Program-made: the position numbers and the translations under genes
In this document: piece after piece, positions 49,601 to 64,000 of the stretch
Numbering within the stretch: position 1 is the stretch's first letter
Layout: the number at the start of each line of letters is the position of its first letter
Notes under the pieces: model-generated
Seen by the model: the letters and a program-made list of their open reading frames with translations, nothing else
Told to the model about the DNA's origin: nothing
The model's database searches: none
Origin: Trichoplax adhaerens
Taxonomy: Eukaryota; Animalia; Placozoa
DNA: 64,000 bases
Reading direction: 5' to 3'
Assembly: GCF_000150275.1 (NCBI RefSeq)
Contig: NW_002060943.1
Span: forward strand, 6,750,299 to 6,814,298

Positions 49601-51602
49601 ACTTCTGTAATCTATTTCCTTTCCTATGTATCATGAAATCAAGGTTGATTGAATGATAACTATGCTTTAAAATCTTCTGTTAGTTTCATTCCTCTCGTTT
49701 ATCGATACGAGCAACATCGAAACTCTATCTTTATGAGCAATATTAAAAACGAGCAGATTGGAGTTATGGGTCAAAATACGTCTTAACAATAAATATTGCA
49801 TCATATCACTTGAAATGAAGTATTATACTGTATTCTATCATCTCAAATTACAAAAAATATACTTTTTCCTTCTTAGACTTATGTCGCAACAGTTTAAATT
49901 AAAATAGATTCCTATCGTATGTTCGATTAATACCTGGAAAGAAAACACGAAATAAAATAACAAAGACAACAGTAAAATCATACATTAATAAAATGTATAC
50001 AATGTGACTCAGCATAACCTTGCTATTATAACGATTCAATTTTATGGATAACATAAACTGAAGTAACAATAACTGAAGTAAATAAGATCAGTAATGGAAT
50101 AATACTTCGACTTTATGCAATGACTTAATAACAGATATAATAAAGGTCGATTAGAACGTAAAAAAATGGGCTAAACGATCATAAATAGTCTAAGGCCACT
50201 TTCAGCAAGATATTTTTTTACGATCAATGTCTTACTATAGCTTGAATTGGACTTATCAACTCTGTCAAGTACATAATTTGTGTTTAAGATGAATTCTAGA
50301 TCGATGAAAACAAATACTGCAGTACACGAAAGTGGTTTATTGGCCGATATTATTTTTCTTTGTACATGCTTATGAACTCATTCTCTATATAATCTTAAAC
50401 TTTAAAAGTTGACCGCAACAACGACATCATAATTTATGCCTACTGGATTAGCGATGGCTATCTTAATCAACAGGAAGAACTGTAGGCATTCTTACTTTTA
50501 AGATTTAGCAATCTCAAAACAACACCGGTCCTTTTGATAAAGACCGGCCGTCTATTTGATCAAGTATTTCGTACTATAGGTAGCCATAGACTACGAGAAG
50601 GAGTCTATGCTATGCATTGCCTTAAAATTTGTACTAATTACAATTATTAGAAGGGAAAATCAACTCTGTTGTAAGATGTTATGCAATCGGACTTTGTCAA
50701 TGTTATTGACAAAGACCATAGTTAAAAATATCGCTTTAGATTTACGACAATATGCAACTTAATTATACGGGAATACTAGCACAATGGCGTACCATGATGG
50801 TTAATGTTCGATTAAAAATGTTTAGTAAAAATGTTTTAATCTTCTCAATTTGACAATATCGATAAAATCAATATAAAACAGTCTATTGCTTCATATCGTG
50901 ATTTAAATGATATTGCTTAATAATCAAATAGTAGTATCTCCATAACATGAGATGTTATCCTATCCACGATATTATTATTTTTATTTCTGAGACTGCAGTA
51001 ATCTGCAAACCATCTCTTTTGATTTCATATAATATTGTAATTCTCATGACAAAATGAACAACTTACAATCGTTGCGATAATGTGTAACCAAATAGGCGAT
51101 GTATCCAATTTGTTTTATCTCTTTGATTAATGTTGATATTTCCATGAAAGAAAGATTCATGTTCAAGAATTTATTAATGGATAAAATTGTCTAGTGTGCT
51201 AGCAAAATTTGAATTATGATGTTAATATGGTTGTATCTATTCCATCCATAGGCTTGATAACCGTGAAATTCGGCGCTAAAATGCAGCAAAATGCAGCAAC
51301 ATAAGGACGATAGCAATATAAAGTTGATTAATTAAACAGGTCTAGTGTGATAGTGATATATCGAGAACTATCGGCTAGATTAATTTCTTTACGAATTGTA
51401 ATCGCAGATTTTACCACCATCTCGATATTGCTACAAAGGATAATTTGGCTATTTCTTGTACAAATTTTTATTGAATTTATTCTCTCGATGGTCTGGGCTT
51501 AATTTAGTGTTGAATTTAATGTATCGTTCCATTTGATACTATACCAGATTATTTGGTGGATAAAAAGATTGTAAATATCTCAATTTCCTAGTCTATACCG
51601 AT

Positions 51603-53760
51603 ATGCTGAAATCATTAAAGAAAAGTGTCCGATTGTCACTCAGTGATTCTAACAGTTATGAAAAGAAGGAAAAGAAAGAGCCTACAAAGTCGGCATCATT
51701 TTCCTTGCGCAACCTAGAGCTAACGGTTAAGTATATGGGCTATTTGCCAGTATCCGATGCTCGCTCGCTGCAAACGTTAAAACAAGCCATTCGATTTGTT
51801 GTTCAACAAAGGATACGTAGAACTCACTCACGATTTGAAATGAGAAATTTCCAAGTTATTATTTATGATTTAGAAAGTGAAGACACAATTCTTGATATCC
51901 CAATACAGAAAGTAGCGTTATGTGGTAAAGAATTTGTCAAGGGTTTCGAAAAATGTTTTGCAGTCAATGTTACTACCGATGATTCTCATGTTTGCCATGT
52001 CATGCAAGCAGCAACGACCTATGAAGTAAATGCTGATATTGAATATTTTTGGGGAATTACTCATCAATACGATAGCACTTTATGCTTCCGTTTATTTTAG
52101 TGATGTTTTAGTAAATTTCCCTTTATTTTAATTGATATGCATAAAATTGATCTCCCTTGATTGACCGCTAATTAGAAACGAATTTATTGATTATAAGTTT
52201 AACTTTTATCCCATGACTTATTTATCTTGAAAGGCGGAAAAGTTTTTGGTTAAAATTGCTGAAGCATTTGAAGCCCTAGGAAAAATGGCTAAAAAGTCCA
52301 AGCAACGAAAATCAACGATTCCTACTCAAGCTGCGCCAACATCGAAATCAACACCGGTAGGTTTTGTTAACGGTAGCCATTTTTTTACTATCTTAATGAA
52401 ATGCAAGAATCATTTTTTGAACCTTAGTGCAGGATTATTGATGTATAAAGACATTTGAACTCTTTTTCTTTACCTATTTTAACGAATTTCCAAATTATGG
52501 CTTTACTATTTAAAGGCATCTGATGAAATGGCTCGTTCTGATAATGGCAGCCAGCAACGATCTCGATATAGCAGCAATTTTCTTAATGTCGATAACCCTA
52601 ACACCTTGTCAACAGGGATCTCGAGGGATAGTCATGATGGTTTATCGAACTCGATGGAAACACGACAATTACCACCCATTCCAAAGAATTTCAACTACGA
52701 TAATGCAGAAGTTAGTCAATCTCATCACGCTAATGAGAGCCATGGACTACAAATTCGACCGCTACCACCAGTACCAGATGTAGCGAGAAATTCGTCAGGC
52801 CATGATGATGAAGATGTAGCGAATAGAGAAACTCTATATGCTAGTTTAAAGAATACCGTGAAAAAGGATGAAGTAGAAGATCCTTATAGTACAATTAAAA
52901 ATAAACTCGGTGAAGAAAATCCATATAGTACAGTTAAAAATAAACGTGTTGACGAAAATCCTTATAGTTCGGTTAAAAACAAATCAAACGAAGAAAATCC
53001 CTATAGTACGGTTAAAGATAAATTAAATGAGGAAGACCCTTATAGTTCTATAAAAGACATTCGTAAGGCTAAACTTAAATTAGCCCTAAGTCAACCAGGA
53101 CAAGAAAATATAACTACCCAAGGGACACCTCAGTATCAAACAGAAGATGAAGAAGATCCTTATAGTACTGTTCGTACTAAAACCAATAGTGATAATAGTA
53201 AATCCGATGTGGTCATTCAGGTTCGTAGCCCAGCCGGAAATCTTGAGGTATCTGCACATGCAAATGATTCGACTAGAGGTAATCCGGCTAAGCAAGTGGA
53301 TGAGCAAACAGGCGAAAATAAGAGCGGCGCAGTTATGGCCGAGTTTAAAGCTAGCATTACTCCAGATCTATACGAAGCCAGAAAGTCATATCAAAGTAGA
53401 CGTAGTATTGCAAATCAATGGACTAGTTATAATGTCTCCGAAGTATTTGAAGAAGTGGGCGGCGACGAGCAAAATGATGTAAAATCCAATAAAAAATTTT
53501 ATGATCCTACCGATATTTATGTTAATCTCCATAAATATAGAATGCAAAATCAAAATAAATCCAGTTCTTCCCGTCAATATAATGATGTTACTAACAAAAT
53601 CGATGATAAAGGGGATAGCGAAAAAGTCCATCAACAAAGTGCGACTAAGACTAATGACAGCCAAGTCGATGGAAATTTATCGGTTAACCAACATAAATTT
53701 TATCAAAGTATTAAAGATGTTCAGAGTACTTATCAGAAACTTAAAAGTAAAATAAAGTAA
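51603..53760 (+). CDS. PTB-domain phosphotyrosine scaffold with SH3-ligand motifs and tandem YS(T/S)(V/I) repeats; exons 51603-52025, 52234-52356, 52516-53756/53760
   Basis: PTB/PID pattern LTVKYMGYLPVSD..IPIQKVALCG..KCFAVNV..HVCHVMQA..AEKFLVKIAEAFE with phase-0 junctions in frame, then a disordered tail with RQLPPIP, RPLPPVP, TLYASL, six E(D/N)PYS(T/S)(V/I) and IYVNL. An acceptor at 51591 implies a further upstream exon, so the true start is uncertain. Confidence 0.8.
52873..53067 (+). repeat. Coding tandem repeat, 39-bp / 13-aa unit x5, with a sixth copy at ~53149
   Basis: VEDPYSTIKNKLG / EENPYSTVKNKRV / DENPYSSVKNKSN / EENPYSTVKDKLN / EEDPYSSIKDIRK, plus EEDPYSTVRT. Confidence 0.95.
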
Positions 53761-53987: not shown

Positions 53988-56900
53988 ATGTGTAGATCGA
54001 ACTTAGTCAAGCAACATAATCAACAGCCAACCCAATTAGATACAAGAGAGGCAGTTCGCCGTGTTGTTAGTGAAATATATAAATATGATTACAGGTTTGT
54101 TCTATATTTTAAAATTTAGCAAAGTGAGCTAGTTTGTATGGTATTGTTTTAATTTACCGTACTCAAGATGTTATGGTTATGTGATTATTAAACGATATAC
54201 AATTTGCTGCCGATCGATTCAGGCTAGATAATTCTGAAAAATTAAAAGAAATTATTGATGAAACATCGATCAGCGTTGATTCTATCGATCCTGAAACTGG
54301 CTACAGCTTGCTGCATCATTCAGTATCAAGTGAAAGTTTATCTTCGATCAATTTTTTCCTGGAAAGGTTAAGATCTATCTAGAATTATTAACGATAAACC
54401 TGTAGTAAAGCTAAATCTTGAGGGAATGAGCGCATAATTATGTTAAACTACGCATACATTACGTCCTGCTGTAGCGCATATTAATGATTAATCCGGATAG
54501 TTAATAAGAATTTTAACTTAAATGGCAAACATACGGCACCATAAATACCCCTTGCTGGACCTTACTCCTTCACTAAACGAAAGTAATCTATCTAAACGCT
54601 ACTTCCAACAGTTGGTAAAGCTACTCTATATAAGGTCGACCTTTGATAGACCAATTATCGCTAGATCATCATGATGCTTATAGACTCCAATTGATATTAG
54701 CATAAGCAAAATATATCTATATAACTTCGGAGTTAATTCTAGTGTAAATAACGCAAATTTTTATTACAGCCGTAGTAAATTTCTACGTAAGAGCTGGAAA
54801 ATAGCAATCGAGTATCGTCATTACATATTTCACTGTATATATCGCTGATTAATTAAGTTATCGTACTTGTAAATCGACCGTAATTGAATCTCAGGAAAAA
54901 TATTATGGAATCCTTTTCTTTCTCATATGCTGTATTAACGTTAATTCTATTCCAATACAGGGGCGCTAACGTCAATGTTCAAAATAGAGACAAGAGGACA
55001 CCACTTCATGTCGGTGTAACTACCGGCAATTTTTCAATTGTCAAACGTTTACTTTGCCACGGAGCCGATGTTACTATTAAAGATACGCACGGGTAAGAAC
55101 TATCCACAATATTATAATTGAAACATCGAATAAATTAACAGACTACACTGTTTTGTGGATTGTATTTTCATAATTTAACAGTAAAAATTATCCCTTAGAT
55201 CAACTAATGTAGAGTAGAGGTAACGTAACAATATCTACCACTTCTAGTTCTAATTATGAATACCAAACAGTTTAGTTGCTCAGCCCAATGATTTTTCGCG
55301 CGATAGGAGTTGTTGCTGGAATTAACGCTTTCATACCATTATTATTACTGAGAAATTTTAACCTCATTGCCAATAGGCGTACAGCATTACATCTGGTTAT
55401 GGGTCTGCAATTAGATCGTAAAATGATGTTACTACTTGTCGAATATGGAGCAAGAATCAGCGAGGCCGATTCCAGTAGTACAAGACCTGTCGATATTGAG
55501 CCGGTTAGTTGTTCTTGCCAATCCGATTTTTCAATCGTAGTTTATAGTTGTAAGCAATACCTTTGAACAACTAATTGCTTTGATATCATATTTAAAATCT
55601 AATTCTAGGAGCTACGAGTTATCCAACGAGAAATGATCCTAAAATGCAACGATGAATTATGCACAATTGATGTTGGAGCAATATTTAGAATTCGCTCTAG
55701 AGTTAATTCTAAAAGTTCGGTAGGATCAGGAACAGGTTCCATAAAAAGTATAGAAAGTCGATCGAATTTTTCTATAACAAATGAAGAAGTAAGACTTAAA
55801 TTAGGTGGCATTGAAGAAAATTCAAATGATAATCCTGATAATTTACTAGCGGTTCCTAATAAGCAACAAAGTGATATACCGGGGAGTGATGAGGAAAATG
55901 TTAACTATGACATCGAATTTGGTGATGGGTCGGATAAATTGACTAATTTTCCGAATGTTCTTGATGCTGCTTTACATGATAGCTTTGATGATCAAAGTGA
56001 AATTCTTAGTGACGAAAGTAATACTTTAAAGGACTCTTTAAAAAGTGAATTTATAAAAGCTACTAATGAAATAACTGAATCTAGTACGACTGTAAATAAA
56101 GAGACTACCAACGTTAAATTGGCGCCTGCTAATACCGAACTTCAAGCATCACATCAGAGCGGAGGCAATAGTAGGAGACAAATCACTAAAGAAAATTCTT
56201 CTTTTTCTGATAATAATAAGGACGACTTGGTACCAGTTTACCAAGGAGAAAATTTGATGAGTGATGACAATATCAACGACAATGAGTTTAGCAGTGATTT
56301 GGACGCTTGGGGTGGCGTATTTTCCGAAATGGATGCTTGGGATGATGTCTTTGTGGAAGAAAATTCCAATTTATCATGTAATAGGCAAGGGAATAACGAT
56401 CTGCCTGACACTTCTTCACTAAAGCTTTCAATAGGTCACTCATTCGATCAAAAGCCACTATCACGAGAAGATATTATCAAGAATAAGATTAGTAATGTAG
56501 AGCTTATTCAAACGTTAAAGATTGAAAACAGCTATCTCGAAGGGCCAAATAATAAAGCTGTGCTTCCCGATGATCCAGCAGAATTAGAAGATTTTGACAG
56601 TAAAGAAATATTTGGGCAAGAAGAAAAAGCCGCTAAAAATCTTCGAAGTTTAGCAATTCTTTCCAAGAATCCAGAATGTCATACTATAATATTATCCTTA
56701 CTCTTCGCTCCAAACAGTATCTTGCAGAAGAATAACCCGAAAAGTTCACCAAGAACTTTATCTGTTCAGTTGACAGCTTTAGCACACACGGAATCTTCTG
56801 TAAAATCTCTTCCCCGTTATTTGGCTTCGTTTATATTTACACTGTGTAAAGTAAGTAAATATGAAAATTATAATATATTTTAAATTTTTAATCGACAGAC

Positions 56901-59900
56901 ATTGGTTCTCACAGTATTTTAATTACTTCTAAGCTTAAGTCGACATGTAAAAGCAGATTATGTTAATAAAATTCTTAAATGTCTATATAATCTATCCAGT
57001 TAGATTAATATTTTTCCCTCTTTATTTCTTGATCAGTCCGATGGTATTAATAGTCAAAAGAAATCTATCAATAGCGGAATTGTTAATTTGCTGTCTGATT
57101 TATTGGATTCTAAAGCTGATCTGATCAAAGTAAGTACGCTTAAACAGATAAGAACTTATATGAAAATACCTTGCATACTGCTAGCGATTTGTCAATTTAA
57201 TTGACGAGATATCTCACTCCTAACAATTTATGGGGTAAAGTAGTCAAATAAACGTAAAGAATTAAGCCTTATCTATAGATAGTATTTAAACGATTTGTAC
57301 GGTAGATAAAATTATGAAATATCAACCTATGCTTTTCTAACTTTATTTAAATCTATTTTAGAAAATAAGCTAATAATACTATTTGCATCATTGATATATA
57401 GCGTTATGGAATATTAATCTATGTCTTTGTGAACTTCCTTTAATCCATTTTAGAAAATAAGTTTATCGTTGATATGGGAATTACTCCATATCGACAGCGA
57501 TCGGGAATTTTGTACAGTCCTATCGCATTTCCACGTTGATCCTATGCTTGATTTAGTCGCTCAATGTGAAGCTGAGCAAGATATGCGAGCTGATGAATTT
57601 GATCCTAATGCAATAGATGATATGTATAGACAATATGTATTGAATAGCCATAACCTGAAAGATAAGTAAGTAATAAAATTGAGCAACTCCTTATATTAAA
57701 CTGAATATTCCTATCCTTATTATTTTTTTTTATTATTGATTAGCTAAAAACCGGCAATTTAAATCCGGTTTATTTATAAAAGTGGTAATAGACATATACT
57801 TATGGCTCATACTTATTTTCTCTTTACTATAGTGAAATAATAAGTATGGCCAGCAAAGTTCTTGCTCGGACTAGTATTTATTCCAAAATTAGAAGGAGCT
57901 TAAGCCAAGCTAAAGCTATTGCACTGTTATGTACAACTCATGCACTCCTTCCTCCTACTGAATCTTATCTTTTGGGTTGTACTGTTGCTAATATTGCTAT
58001 GGATGCAGATAACCATGCCGTACTGGAAGAATATAATATTTCATACGCACTCAGGGTAAAATAATTAGTATTATCAGCCATTGCTTATTTTCGATCCTAC
58101 TTAGCATAGTACGGTTAATGGGCTAAGTTGCTATTTAGATCTTAATTTCACTTGCTTTTGAACTAAAATTGATGCCTTTGACTATTTTTGAATAGCCGTT
58201 GCTTTCATCAAAGGATCCTTTCATGCAATATCATGCCGCTCGCTGTTTAGTCTACATGGGCTATTATGATTTACATATCTATCTCTTTAGCCAAGATTAT
58301 GATGAAATGTTGGGCGACGTAATATACGCCAACGATAATCAATCTGAGCACGACTATATCAGGTAAAAACTGTATGACCTAATTCACTTTCTTGCGATCC
58401 CCTGAGCGAAGCTTAATGAAAGACCTTTATCATAAAAAGAAATAGAATTGTACCTGAATTTACCAGTGTACTTATACTGATTATTTAATTACAGGGGCAC
58501 GACTTTAGAACGAATTGTTGAAATATTAACTGGAAATTCATCGGTTTTATGGGGTGGCTCATCGCTGACACGAAATTCGTCCGGTGATTTACGAGAGAAT
58601 AGTGATGAAAAACATTCGACTGTTCTCGCAAGTGAACAAATATTAGAGTTTATCTTGACCATGTTTTCAACGTTTGTTAGCGCTGAAATATTGATGAATT
58701 TATTACTGCATCGGTAAGAGAAAGATACTGATGTCTTGCGTTAAAACTGATTTCATTGTTTATCCCTTAAAGAACATTAGATCTTTATGTATTTGATTAC
58801 ACGAGCGCTCTTGATTATAACTTATTCGTTATTTTTGCAGATTTCGTCATCCATCTGCATCTCGAATATTTGGATGGAAGATTAAATCTAGTTCATCACC
58901 CATCGATAGTGAAAATCCCATGGAAATGTATTCGCCATTACCTTTAGTTCACGTTTATTTAATGAGAGTATGGGAAATGTGGTTGGAAAACTTTTCTGAT
59001 GATTTCGTTACCAATTACGGCTTAGCGGTATGGAATTTATATTGATACGTTAACCTAATGAGCCAAGTAATTTTTGATCTTTCCTAATAATTAGATTTCC
59101 TTGAGTAAACTTATTCCATCTATGAGACTTGCCGGTGGTCCTTATCGACCGGCTGCAGCGAGATTGGAAGAACTCTTAGGCAAAATAAAGGTAAAACATA
59201 AAATTAAAATTTTGAATTTTGTTTTTATTAATCTAAGATTAATGATATTAAAATACTGATTGGCATGAAACTAACGTTTCAAACTTAAAGCGACTGTCAC
59301 TTATTGCAACTTTTTATTTCAGACCCGAAAATTATCTGACTCTAACCTTGAGGGAACAGGTTCCTTTGAAGCGATCCATAATAAACTATATGAACAGGTT
59401 AAAATTTATATCCAGTGCGCTGTTATTCTTATAATAGATTGCAAGTTTGCTTGCAATGTTCATTTAAATGAGTAGATAAATTAGTGAATACTTTAAATAT
59501 TTCTTTTGTCATTTACCTTCACTATTTTAGATATTAATATTATGCATGATTTCTATATAATAGTGTAAGTTTGATATTATCGGTGGAACGCAACCTTGCT
59601 CTATCGAAGAAGCTGCAAAACTCGCTAGCATTCAGCTTTATATTGAGGTATGATCTTCGATAGATGTTTATCGAATCTGTCATCATGGCTTTCATCCAGT
59701 TTATTTAATTAATGATAAAATCACTTAAATTGTTGTTATATGGACTTAATTAGGATATCACCGGTGTTATAGAAGAAAATCATGACAATAACTATTCATT
59801 ACACTTCCTAAAGCCAAAGAAACAAATTTTAATCAATAATCCTGACCAGGATTTGGTTGTTAGCAGGTTGAAATTGAAATAAATACTTTCAGATAACATC

Positions 59901-62900
59901 GTAGGATAAATACCGTAGTTATTATGATGATAAATATGTCACAATATCCCAATACTTCTGAAATTAATTTGTGTTCATTTCTATAGTGTGCGATATAATA
60001 TTTGTAATTCAATATTTAATATGCATTACTATTTAATTCGCTGGTAACATGAATTTGATATTATCTCTTAATTATAGAGCATCTAGTAGCCGAATAAAGT
60101 ATTGCTTGCCTAACGTCTTTGCAAAATCAAAATTGGCAACTAAAATGTAGGTCAAGAATTCATAAGCTGAGGATACGTAAATGTATTATAAGTTAGAATT
60201 ATCGTTCAAAACCAATACGTACTATAAATAATGACGCAGTTAGTGTACTTAATATCATTCTTCGCATCATAAAAAATTCCCTCTAGTGATATTGAAACAC
60301 TTTTTTTTGGTTAGGGTCAAAGAACTGCACGAAGATTTATGTCTAGATAATCCATCAGAGCGAAACGCGAAGCATTCTTACATCGATTATTGCCAATCGT
60401 TAACAACGTATGGTTGCTGCGTCTTTAATTTAGAGGTACTGCCACCCTAACATACGCAAAATACATCACTGCATTCTATAAAAATCTGACATCTTGTATA
60501 TCTTAACTTCTGATAATATCCAGGAAGTGATTGTTGTCGCCAATAGTAAGCACAAACGTCCCAAAGCAGAATACGAGAAACGATTGCTATGTATACATCC
60601 AAAACATGTCATTATGATTGATGCTAAAACAAAGGTAAGATCATTTACATTCTCTTATTAGCAATGGCTTTAATTGCTCTACAGGTAGATAATAACAATC
60701 ATTCTATCGCAATCTGATGTCTGGCCGTGACTTGCTGCGACATGGATAGTAGTTACGAAAAAAATATTATCAACTAGATTTAAATGGTGACTAATTTATC
60801 TGAAACTGTAATTTTCTATATCCAAAATTAGGAAAAGATCTCGTATAATAGCTTTCAAACACTAAAACGTTGGGAACCAGGACATTTTGGCCATGTGGTT
60901 ACGATGCAGTTGACTTTTACGAATAAAGCACATACCTTCCTTCTGGAGGATGAACAGTATGTAATTTCAAATCCTAATAATAATTACAGTGAAAAATGAA
61001 TTGATTCCATGCAGCATTTAGATTACTTTGTTTATATTCATGATTTCTGTTTGTATTTGAATAGGCAATGGCAGGAATTAGATCTGCTATTTTGGGCATG
61101 TATTGAAGAATTAGACTGGCAGGTAAGATTGCTGCATTGGTGATATACGTTAGTAAAGGAGAATAATCGTATATTATGATTATTATAATTATTGGTTATA
61201 CTTTAACTAGTTTAAATTGTTGTTCTCATAGCGAATCTCAAAGATGAGTAAAACTCCCTGGAGTAAACTAGCTGAGGAAACTCAGACTTGGGGTCGAGCG
61301 GCAGCGGCAGCACATGCTAGAACGATTACTGTTCAGGCTGCAGCAAGATTGAGTAGTTCTACGGCTACCGAAGAAGATCTTGAAAATTATCATAGTGTAG
61401 CAGAGTTAAAAGCAAAAACCGTCAGCCACGGTGGTAGTTTGTCTTCTTTAGGATCAGGAAGTGTAACTCTTCGTCGAAGTAGTACTGCCAAACAGTCTTC
61501 TAATGGAAGTTCTTATTCAAGCGGCAAGGACGTTGATGAACGGCTAAGATCAGTTCCAATGCGAAGAAGATCACATCAAAATAATGGTAATGTTCAATAG
61601 ATTAAAGGGATAAATAATTACGTCATAAACGAACTTAGAGGCTACTATATCGATCATTTTTATGGTATATCATCAGCTACTTTTCTTGCTTTTCATATTT
61701 ATTTCAGCCTGCCATATTGTAACTTAAACTTTTTTCATATCTACATTAATAATACCTTTATATACTAATTATGTACGCGTATGTAATTTTTGTATTTGAA
61801 TTTGGTCATGATGTCTAATACGTTAAGACATACGGCAATAATGCAACTGTTTCTGTCGATGATTGTTTGTACCTGTATAAATAAATTAATTTGATTCGTA
61901 TTCATGTTTGCATGGTAATATCGTAACTCAAAATATAGAAGGACGTGGATCGCCCATGAAACCTCCATCAGATACTCCAAAGTGGCGCATGAGGCAAGTG
62001 TGGGCACTTAGTCAGCCGCCAGCAATTAAGAAGCAAGTTTCTCGCGACTCTGTGAACTCTGATGCCTCATTAGATGAAAGCTGGGTTTATGTGGAAAGGC
62101 GATCATCATCATCTGGGGAGTCTACACAGACCCCAGCTACCGGTACTTCTTTATTAGATGACCAATCCAATACATGGTATCGTCGCAATCATCCGTCATC
62201 ACCAGATTCAAGAAGTAAAAGAAATCAGACCGTGCGAACTTCGCCTAGGCTAGCTCAAAGAGATCGTCATCAATCCAATACCATTCCTCGTGAAGATAGT
62301 AATACTTCGCTCAATCTCTCTCTAGCTGAGAATAAAAATACCAACGACGATTACCGTAAATCGTCCTTCGTTACAAGTTCACCAACCGATTCTTTTATCG
62401 ATGTTAGCACCATAGTAGATGAAGCTTACGCTAATGATACTTCTAAAGGAAGGAGTATTAGTCGTGCATCAACATCAAGCAGCATCGCGGAAAGTTTAAC
62501 TACAAATGAGACAAAGAAATTACCAAGAAATTCTACTTTTGGTAGTCTAGAAAGCGAATTAGGTTATAGTAATAGTAATAAATCAACTGAGAGCAGCCTC
62601 TCAAGAAGGGATATGGTTAAACCGGCTGGCGTTAAATCAATTGAAAGTTATGGAATTGTAGTGGATTTCCCAAAATGTCCTTGCCCACCAGATCCGGACT
62701 TGCCAGAATTGGACCTAGAAAGTATAACGTAAGTAAAGAAGATTTTGTACTGTACCTCTTAATACTTCATCGCCATCCTGCTAATCGCCTAAACTACTTA
62801 CTGTACGGAAATAGACGTATACTTATTCAATTTCTTTTAATAATTTAATCGTATTGTAGAAATATCGATCTTTTACGTTATCCTAGAGAACTGGCAAAGC

Positions 62901-64000
62901 AAATAACCTTGATCGATCACCGTAAGCTATTTAGATTAATAACGGACAACAAATGAATTTTTATATATTCTTATAATTAATAAATTCTAATATACAGTAA
63001 AATTGAATTTAAGATAAAAGCTATTTCAGTATAAAGTTTGATAGGACACTACTGCGTTAATAAGCACGTTGCATTCGTCTTTACTTCACTAGAATTTTTT
63101 ATTTCAAGTTAAGATAGGCTTAATTACATATGACTCTTGGTAATTGTTGTAATGCTATTACAGATTTATTCCGTCAAGTCACTGTTAGTGAGTGTCATAA
63201 AAAATTTTCAAGTGTGTCGAAAAAGAAAAGACATTTTGATGAGAATAATCCTATCCAGGGATTTGCTGAAAGATTTAATAAGGTATGCGACTATAAAGGC
63301 ACTTTAAAACATTTTCAAGGCCTAATCATGGCAACTTTACCTTGATACTAAGCATGAAAGAATTATTTCTCTGTCTTCAATGACAAATTGGACTACTTTT
63401 ATTTTCAGTTAATTAAATTATGCTGGCTACAGACTTTATTTTATTCAAGTTTAATCGACATAAGAATATTCTGCTTCTTTGATATTTTAGTTAAGTCAGT
63501 GGGTAACTGCTTCTGTATTAATGGAAAAGGATATCGAAGTTAGAGCGCATATACTTTGCCAATTTATATTAACGGCCAAGGTAACTAAACTATTAACGTA
63601 GCCTCATTACAAATACAGTAAATATATAGTATACCCTACCATGCACAATACAGAGTTTACTGATAGATATCCACTCTATGGCTTGGATGCTACAATAATC
63701 TCAAAGTTACATCATCTTATATTCATAAAATTTATTTGTAGCATTGCTTGCAATTCGCAAATTACAATGCGGTTATGGCAATTGTTGTTGCCGGACTTGG
63801 AAGCAGTCCAATTCGCCGATTAGAAAAAACGAAAGCGGTATTTAAAAATGTTTTATCTCATCTCTTATTAGATAAATCTTAAATATTAGTTTTAATGCTG
63901 TAGTACCGTAAATTAATTTCTGACTTTAAAATAACAGCAAAACCATACAGATTACGCTACTATTTCTAGATGTAGAAAAGAAGATTCATTTCGATTTTCT
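53988..64000 (+). CDS. Large RasGEF: ankyrin repeats, acidic linker, ARM-like repeats, REM, FERM F2-F3 (talin-like), Ser-rich linker, CDC25 domain; 3' end beyond the window
   Basis: ANK: TGYSLLHHS, GANVNVQNRDKRTPLH, GRTALHL. ARM-like: LLSSKDPFMQYHAARCLVYMG. REM: IRGTTLERIVEIL..FILTMFSTFVSAEILMNLLLHRF..MRVWEMWLENFSDDF. FERM F2: LYEQCKFDIIGGTQPCSIEEAAKLASIQLYIE..AKHLYIDYCQSLTTYG. F3: RLLCIHPKHVIMIDAKTKE..LKRW. CDC25: PRELAKQITLIDHDLFRQV..FAERFNKLSQWVTASVL..RAHILCQFILTAKHCLQFANYNAVMAIVVAGLGSSPIRRLEKT. Confidence 0.88.

Follow-up and report, generated by a model that had tools for sequence, protein, structure and literature searches.

The DNA analyzed here is a 64,000-nucleotide (nt) window of the Trichoplax adhaerens genome (C1414:6750299-6814298). 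From position 53,988 onward its plus strand carries what we read as one protein-coding gene for a CDC25-family exchange factor with several domains, in which a FERM module lacking its F1 lobe, and nearest to that of talin, is placed between the REM and CDC25 domains. The probability of this reading was put at roughly 70%. The gene is real, and an initial annotation, made by reading the same DNA, was largely right about it.

The genome searched comprised 105.6 Mb in 1414 contigs (G+C approximately 33%), and the flanking DNA at C1414:6813299-6823298 was examined as locus L002, in which a position equals the window position minus 63000. Stop-free segments of the plus strand were listed, and each was scanned singly against Pfam. 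Introns were placed by listing frame-keeping GT..AG pairs between neighboring coding segments, and doubtful stretches were read in three frames. The length and stop count of the spliced product were computed over the concatenated exon coordinates, and similarity searches were run exon by exon.

The resulting model has 30 exons on the plus strand and runs from an ATG at window position 53988 to a stop codon at window-equivalent 64750-64752 (coding length 5520 nt, 1839 codons, 0 internal stops). All 29 introns are GT..AG with consistent phases. Strong splice sites are numerous, among them AAAGTAAGT (56851 and 57130) and CAGGTAAGA (61123); three acceptors are ambiguous, those of exon 6 (57003 or 57036), exon 9 (58195 or 58213) and the last exon. 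The gene extends 752 nt beyond the window, so that position 64000 marks the window edge only; window-equivalent 64029-64752 holds the remainder of the CDC25 domain together with the stop codon. The features of the gene are as follows.

53988..54094, plus strand: putative first coding exon, from the first ATG of the open segment 53955-54116; its donor at 54095 joins 54223 in frame
54223-54366, 54961-55092 and 55377-55503, plus strand: three ankyrin-repeat exons (Pfam Ank family; GT..AG joins)
55609..56850, plus strand: large 414-codon exon encoding an acidic, Ser-rich stretch whose C-terminal part is helical (424-codon stop-free stretch; donor AAAGTAAGT at 56851)
57037-57129, 57454-57665, 57833-58055 and 58214-58362, plus strand: four unclassified exons, earlier called ARM-like (canonical splice sites, consistent phase)
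58495-58713, 58841-59027 and 59095-59190, plus strand: REM domain, three exons (Pfam RasGEF_N on the first)
59323-59397, 59564-59647, 59754-59866, 60078-60146 and 60315-60435, plus strand: FERM F2 lobe, five exons (Pfam FERM_M on two)
60524-60634, 60832-60956 and 61065-61122, plus strand: probable FERM F3 lobe, three exons (directly following F2; position of the F2/F3 intron; similarity to talin)
61232-61586 and 61939-62728, plus strand: Ser-rich linker of approximately 380 residues, two exons (open segments of 122 and 280 codons)
62860-62921, 63164-63282, 63491-63580 and 63742-63837, plus strand: CDC25 domain, first four exons (Pfam RasGEF)
64029-64088, 64283-64346 and 64468-64616 (window-equivalent), plus strand: CDC25 domain, further exons (Pfam RasGEF in the last two)

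Within these exons, Pfam matches to Ank, RasGEF_N, FERM_M and RasGEF are colinear with their profiles, all on the plus strand, and fall in the order given by the initial annotation, an agreement far beyond chance. The series of ankyrin repeats, helical region, REM, F1-less FERM F2-F3 (F3 being probable), Ser-rich linker and a complete C-terminal CDC25 domain fits one open frame, and six-frame family searches of the whole genome recovered the same FERM_M and RasGEF places.

The CDC25 domain had been placed from approximately 62.86 kb onward, and there successive exons match RasGEF over profile positions 12-181. Inside the window the matches are at 63124-63342 (profile 12-52), 63491-63598 (49-81) and 63742-63879 (79-112), and past its edge at L002:1283-1345 (130-152) and L002:1470-1616 (154-181, E 9e-6). 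Two CDC25 exons exceed the 23.1-bit Pfam cut-off singly, with 29.5 and 26.2 bits. Upstream of CDC25, RasGEF_N was matched at 58481-58714 by a single exon (profile 3-49, E 7e-3, 16.9 bits), which agrees with the proposed REM domain at a score below the cut-off. The second REM exon gave no Pfam match, and its hydrophobic W..W...DF stretch was read by eye as the usual REM motif; against PDB sequences, the REM exon returned only a spurious WD40 repeat. To our knowledge, REM does not occur in proteins that lack CDC25. On this basis, the FERM exons, which have REM on their upstream side and CDC25 on their downstream side in the same orientation, are placed inside the exchange-factor gene. The F2 lobe starts in phase 0 right after the last REM exon, without a start codon.

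It is very unlikely that the exons stem from two or more genes or were mis-joined, for instance from one gene for the ankyrin and helical part, another for REM-CDC25 and a fragment of FERM. Such an error gains some credit from a model that was frame-selected from genomic DNA, and from two features that are predicted only, the 5' end of the gene and its long intron at 54367-54960. It fits poorly with FERM exons that are flanked by REM and CDC25 in one orientation and have neither a start codon nor F1, with junctions that are all GT..AG in compatible phase and in many cases strong (AAAGTAAGT, CAGGTAAGA), and with the absence of stops from 1839 codons. The 30 exons probably belong to a single gene.

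The F2 lobe is certain. FERM_M was matched by two of its exons, 59564-59647 (profile 20-46, E 3e-3), which had been missed in the frames first chosen, and 60316-60435 (profile 78-112, E 9e-5), so that the FERM assignment is borne out by Pfam. Scanned as the open segment 60253-60447, the latter match covered profile positions 77-112 (E 6e-5) at 23.8 bits, exactly the cut-off. The F2 exons had no match among PDB sequences, and a 40-residue F2 exon returned only meaningless integrase fragments from the ESM Atlas. None of the 12 FERM_N matches found by a profile search of the genome falls in the exchange-factor gene. From the REM motif to the first F2 helix there are approximately 57 codons, made up of exon 59095-59190 and the first part of 59323-59397. 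Since there is no FERM_N match and a lobe of approximately 85 residues cannot fit into this space, F1 is absent, and REM runs into F2 as had been stated.

In order to place the module among the FERM domains of the same genome, a comparison set was assembled from the 16 loci that match FERM_M, FERM_C or IRS (3489 open pieces), and the eight F2-F3 exons were compared with all of these pieces by using phmmer --max and Smith-Waterman alignment. Four of the loci were as follows.

C1414:8984000-8990000 (L004): talin, with pieces that carry talin F2-F3 text and rod-like helices
C1383:88500-95500 (L005): kindlin
C1385:339500-345500 (L003): MyTH4-FERM myosin
C1403:1358500-1368499 (L006): MyTH4-FERM myosin

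Two F2 exons (F2b and F2e) had their best match in the talin locus (E 0.033 and 5e-4 among the 3489 pieces), and the first F3 exon ranked 3-4 of 3489 at the homologous talin exon; a FERM-PDZ gene (L012) gave the second-best F2 match. In the reverse direction, three talin exons each found the corresponding exon here as their best match (E 0.0069, 7e-5 and 0.24 among 515 pieces from window positions 53-65 kb). Three colinear exons, two of F2 and one of F3, are thus reciprocal best hits with talin, with the F3 exon at rank 3-4 forward and rank 1 in reverse. By pairwise BLASTP, the last F2 exon shares 12/28 identities with talin (E 3e-8), and the first F3 exon shares 9/18 with the first F3 exon of talin (E 9e-5, a single comparison). 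By sequence, talin is the nearest FERM among the FERM-hit loci fetched from this genome.

Gene structure was compared in the same way. Two introns, one following the first F2 helix and the other separating F2 from F3, agree in position and phase among the exchange factor, talin and a myosin-VII-like gene. Being shared by three genes, these two introns look old. The intron after the KTK motif is identical to that of the myosin gene and one codon off that of talin, and the remaining F2-F3 introns differ in position.

The initial annotation had the F3 segment closely parallel talin F3. This stood for the first half, with the 9/18 identities given above, and did not for the second, in which similarity is weak and the BLASTP alignment is out of register. 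When placed in register, the second F3 exon shares only T-[LI]-[KR]-R-W with talin, with the Trp 14 residues past KTK in both proteins. A stretch RLL.I...V...D.KTK and an R-W pair are common to the two. The F3 exons had no match among PDB chains, two of them found only themselves in their own genome, and genome-wide family searches with IRS and FERM_C gave no match within the exchange-factor gene. Used as an HMMER query against all libraries, the first F3 exon returned only a spurious repeat protein (P0001), such a short query being blind below approximately 60% identity. The lobe is probably an F3 of the type seen in talin, kindlin and myosin, with its conserved Trp.

The Ser-rich linker between F3 and CDC25 is coding, as had been claimed. 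Its exon 61939-62728 is 71% identical over 92% coverage to a 255-residue open reading frame (ORF; P0002), which is encoded on a contig of 5652 nt in a public sequencing run and ends at the same point as the linker exon. In the alignment, invariant Ser/Arg-rich and acidic blocks of 10-20 residues alternate with variable stretches. This identity, together with the invariant blocks, marks the linker as constrained coding sequence, and suggests that the blocks may be docking or phosphorylation motifs. P0002 is most likely from another placozoan; a metagenome scan with the linker alignment returned no relative.

How widely this architecture is spread bears on its origin. The protein is a member of the CDC25 family, and its combination of ankyrin repeats, REM, FERM F2-F3 and CDC25 was found in no characterized exchange factor. 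There is close to an even chance that it is a placozoan-only domain shuffle, in which an ordinary RasGEF gene captured a talin F2-F3 piece, and not a member of an ancient family. In keeping with such a capture, the sole relative found is the 71% identical ORF, probably placozoan, and no description of a FERM-RasGEF architecture was found in the full-text literature; a literature search for a CDC25-domain phylogeny including Trichoplax likewise gave nothing relevant. Similarity to the animal's own talin is low, however (43-50% over short stretches), and several intron positions are unlike those of talin, so any capture would be old. The ancient GEF family proposed in the initial annotation found no support here, in searches whose exon-sized queries could not reach full-length animal proteins.

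The GTPase on which the CDC25 domain would act was approached through its exons. In the PDB, the last CDC25 exon matched RasGRF1 (2ije, E 1.8e-7), yeast Cdc25 (E 5.5e-6) and SOS (E 2e-3), and also RGL2 and RasGRP; another CDC25 exon had a weak match to yeast Cdc25 and RasGRP2, and other attempts gave weak matches or nothing. No Epac chain was found among the PDB matches of the CDC25 exons tried. Compared with the genome's other ten RasGEF loci, the CDC25 exons gave summed scores of 34-57 bits and no clear nearest paralogue. A target of the Ras/R-Ras type would be the leading candidate, at somewhat less than even odds, Rap would be a possible target, and Ral or another GTPase an unlikely one. 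As a separate observation, a unit of approximately 190 nt occurs at least four times in tandem beside another RasGEF locus (L027:1748-2602, minus strand; C1413 at approximately 5071.2-5072.1 kb), with nearly identical open frames in two minus-strand frames.

Several points weigh against a single exchange factor with a talin-like insert. The 30-exon model is a prediction from genomic DNA alone, and since its splice sites were selected to preserve the frame, the lack of internal stops supports it without being independent proof. The 5' end, with its putative ATG at 53988, is uncertain. The only REM exon to match, at 16.9 bits, lies below the whole-protein Pfam cut-off of 28.3. No Pfam family (IRS, FERM_C or PH) was matched by the F3 exons, the second of which is barely talin-like, with its BLASTP alignment out of register. 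GTPase specificity draws on weak, exon-sized matches. Other organisms yielded no orthologue of this architecture, although exon-sized queries cannot reach full-length animal proteins.

The N-terminal part of the gene was classified in part. Pfam matches at 54884-55093 (Ank E 2.2e-10, Ank_4 E 1.1e-9, Ank_2 E 1.9e-7), together with a weaker one at 54185-54379 (Ank_4 E 0.16), uphold the ankyrin repeats that had been proposed, and the joined exons read as three contiguous repeats. The large exon 55609..56850 has no Pfam match. ARM-like repeats had also been proposed for 56.56-58.36 kb, and this assignment was dropped: by sequence profiles, the exons between 56560 and 58363 match neither Arm, HEAT nor any other Pfam family at E values up to 1. 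The region of approximately 330 residues upstream of REM is, at the level of sequence, of an unclassified type.

The gene upstream (window 51564-53760, plus strand) has its stop codon ending at 53760, which is 227 nt ahead of the putative ATG at 53988. Its terminal exon of 410 codons contains approximately six copies of an acidic motif that includes Pro-Tyr-Ser, and its exon 51564-52097, a supposed PTB domain, gave no Pfam match. On the downstream side, the first gene in the same orientation is PDCD10 (CCM3), at L002:7135-8983 (plus strand; window-equivalent approximately 70.1-72.0 kb), identified by Pfam PDCD10_N (E 1.3e-7) and PDC10_C (E 3e-5). Between the exchange factor and PDCD10 lies a repeat block (L002:3447-4458, window-equivalent approximately 66.4-67.5 kb) with long, mutually similar open frames in three plus-strand frames.

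Five known systems were compared with the exchange factor. The head of talin resembles it in exons that match reciprocally (two in F2, the first in F3), in the RLL.I...V...D.KTK stretch and the R-W pair, and in the position and phase of the intron after the first F2 helix and of the F2/F3 intron. It differs in that no F0, F1, helical rod with vinculin-binding sites or I/LWEQ domain was found in the open segments scanned here, and in that the module here has no IRS-type profile match, has a longer F3 loop and otherwise shifted introns, and sits within an exchange factor. In Epac and PDZ-GEF (RapGEF2-6), the place between REM and CDC25 is likewise taken by a module for targeting or regulation. 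There it is an RA domain, with a ubiquitin-like fold as in FERM F1, whereas the insert here is F2-F3 without a ubiquitin-like lobe; Pfam matches to cNMP-binding, DEP, PDZ and RA were absent from every open segment scanned.

FARP1 and FARP2 combine a complete N-terminal F1-F3 with a DH-PH catalytic unit for Rho GTPases. They share with the present gene the fusion of a FERM module to a small-GTPase exchange factor, but here the catalytic unit is REM-CDC25, for Ras-family GTPases, the FERM module is internal and F1-less, and there is no DH-PH. RasGRF1, yeast Cdc25 and SOS are the top PDB matches of the last CDC25 exon and likewise have REM preceding CDC25; the exchange factor lacks their DH-PH, histone fold and IQ regions and differs in its N-terminus and its insert. 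KRIT1 (CCM1), a Rap1 pathway member/effector and partner in the cerebral cavernous malformation (CCM) complex, also has ankyrin repeats and FERM in one protein. Its full FERM follows directly after the ankyrin repeats, with no REM or CDC25, whereas here ankyrin repeats and FERM are approximately 1000 codons apart. A KRIT1-like origin of this pair of domains was considered due to the neighboring PDCD10 gene and found no support; no KRIT1 locus was identified for comparison. The position of PDCD10 next to a gene with ankyrin repeats and FERM may well be chance.

In the proposed mechanism, which draws on what is established for SOS/RasGRF catalysis and for the talin head, the CDC25 domain, stabilized by REM, would release guanosine diphosphate (GDP) from a Ras-family GTPase by opening the nucleotide pocket. 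F2-F3 would target the factor to the plasma membrane by way of acidic lipids, NPxY-type cytoplasmic tails or both. Other partners would dock on the ankyrin and N-terminal regions, and the conserved Ser-rich linker would be a likely phosphorylation switch. In talin, the R-W pair of F3 strand beta5 contacts integrin tails. Because this pair is kept, F2-F3 may bind such tails, and integrin or other receptor tails could then be coupled to Ras or Rap.

The architecture may also be as modeled and F2-F3 bind no tail, serving instead as a phosphatidylinositol 4,5-bisphosphate (PIP2) anchor or as an autoinhibitory clamp on REM-CDC25 that is freed by phosphorylation of the linker. This is possible, if on the whole unlikely. 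The F3 lobe has no IRS or PTB profile match, whereas the talin, kindlin and myosin FERM genes of the same genome do; the loop that leads into the RLL strand is longer and Lys/Arg-rich, like the F3 loop of talin, which faces the membrane; and the adjoining linker has invariant Ser/Arg blocks. Retention of the talin beta5 R-W pair at the same spacing from KTK speaks for tail binding instead. Doubtful, and less probable again, is the wider proposal that an F1-less talin-type F2-F3 between REM and CDC25 defines an unrecognized animal family that binds NPxY tails (such as those of integrin beta), activates Ras or Rap locally, is older than the adaptor routes of vertebrates and was lost in vertebrates.

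If tail binding by the exchange factor is true, a direct link from receptor to GTPase would follow. In the animals studied, activators of Ras and Rap reach receptors via adaptors (Grb2, Crk) or second messengers, and a CDC25 factor that has a talin-like module of its own for binding tails or membranes would shorten the path from adhesion or receptor signaling to Ras or Rap. Were the architecture to be placozoan-only, it would be a further case of domain shuffling among early-animal RasGEFs, of modest interest. In addition, the gene shows FERM F2-F3 to be usable without F1, in the slot where Epac and PDZ-GEF have their RA domain, and this in an animal in which integrins, talin and kindlin are present, yet cell types are few.

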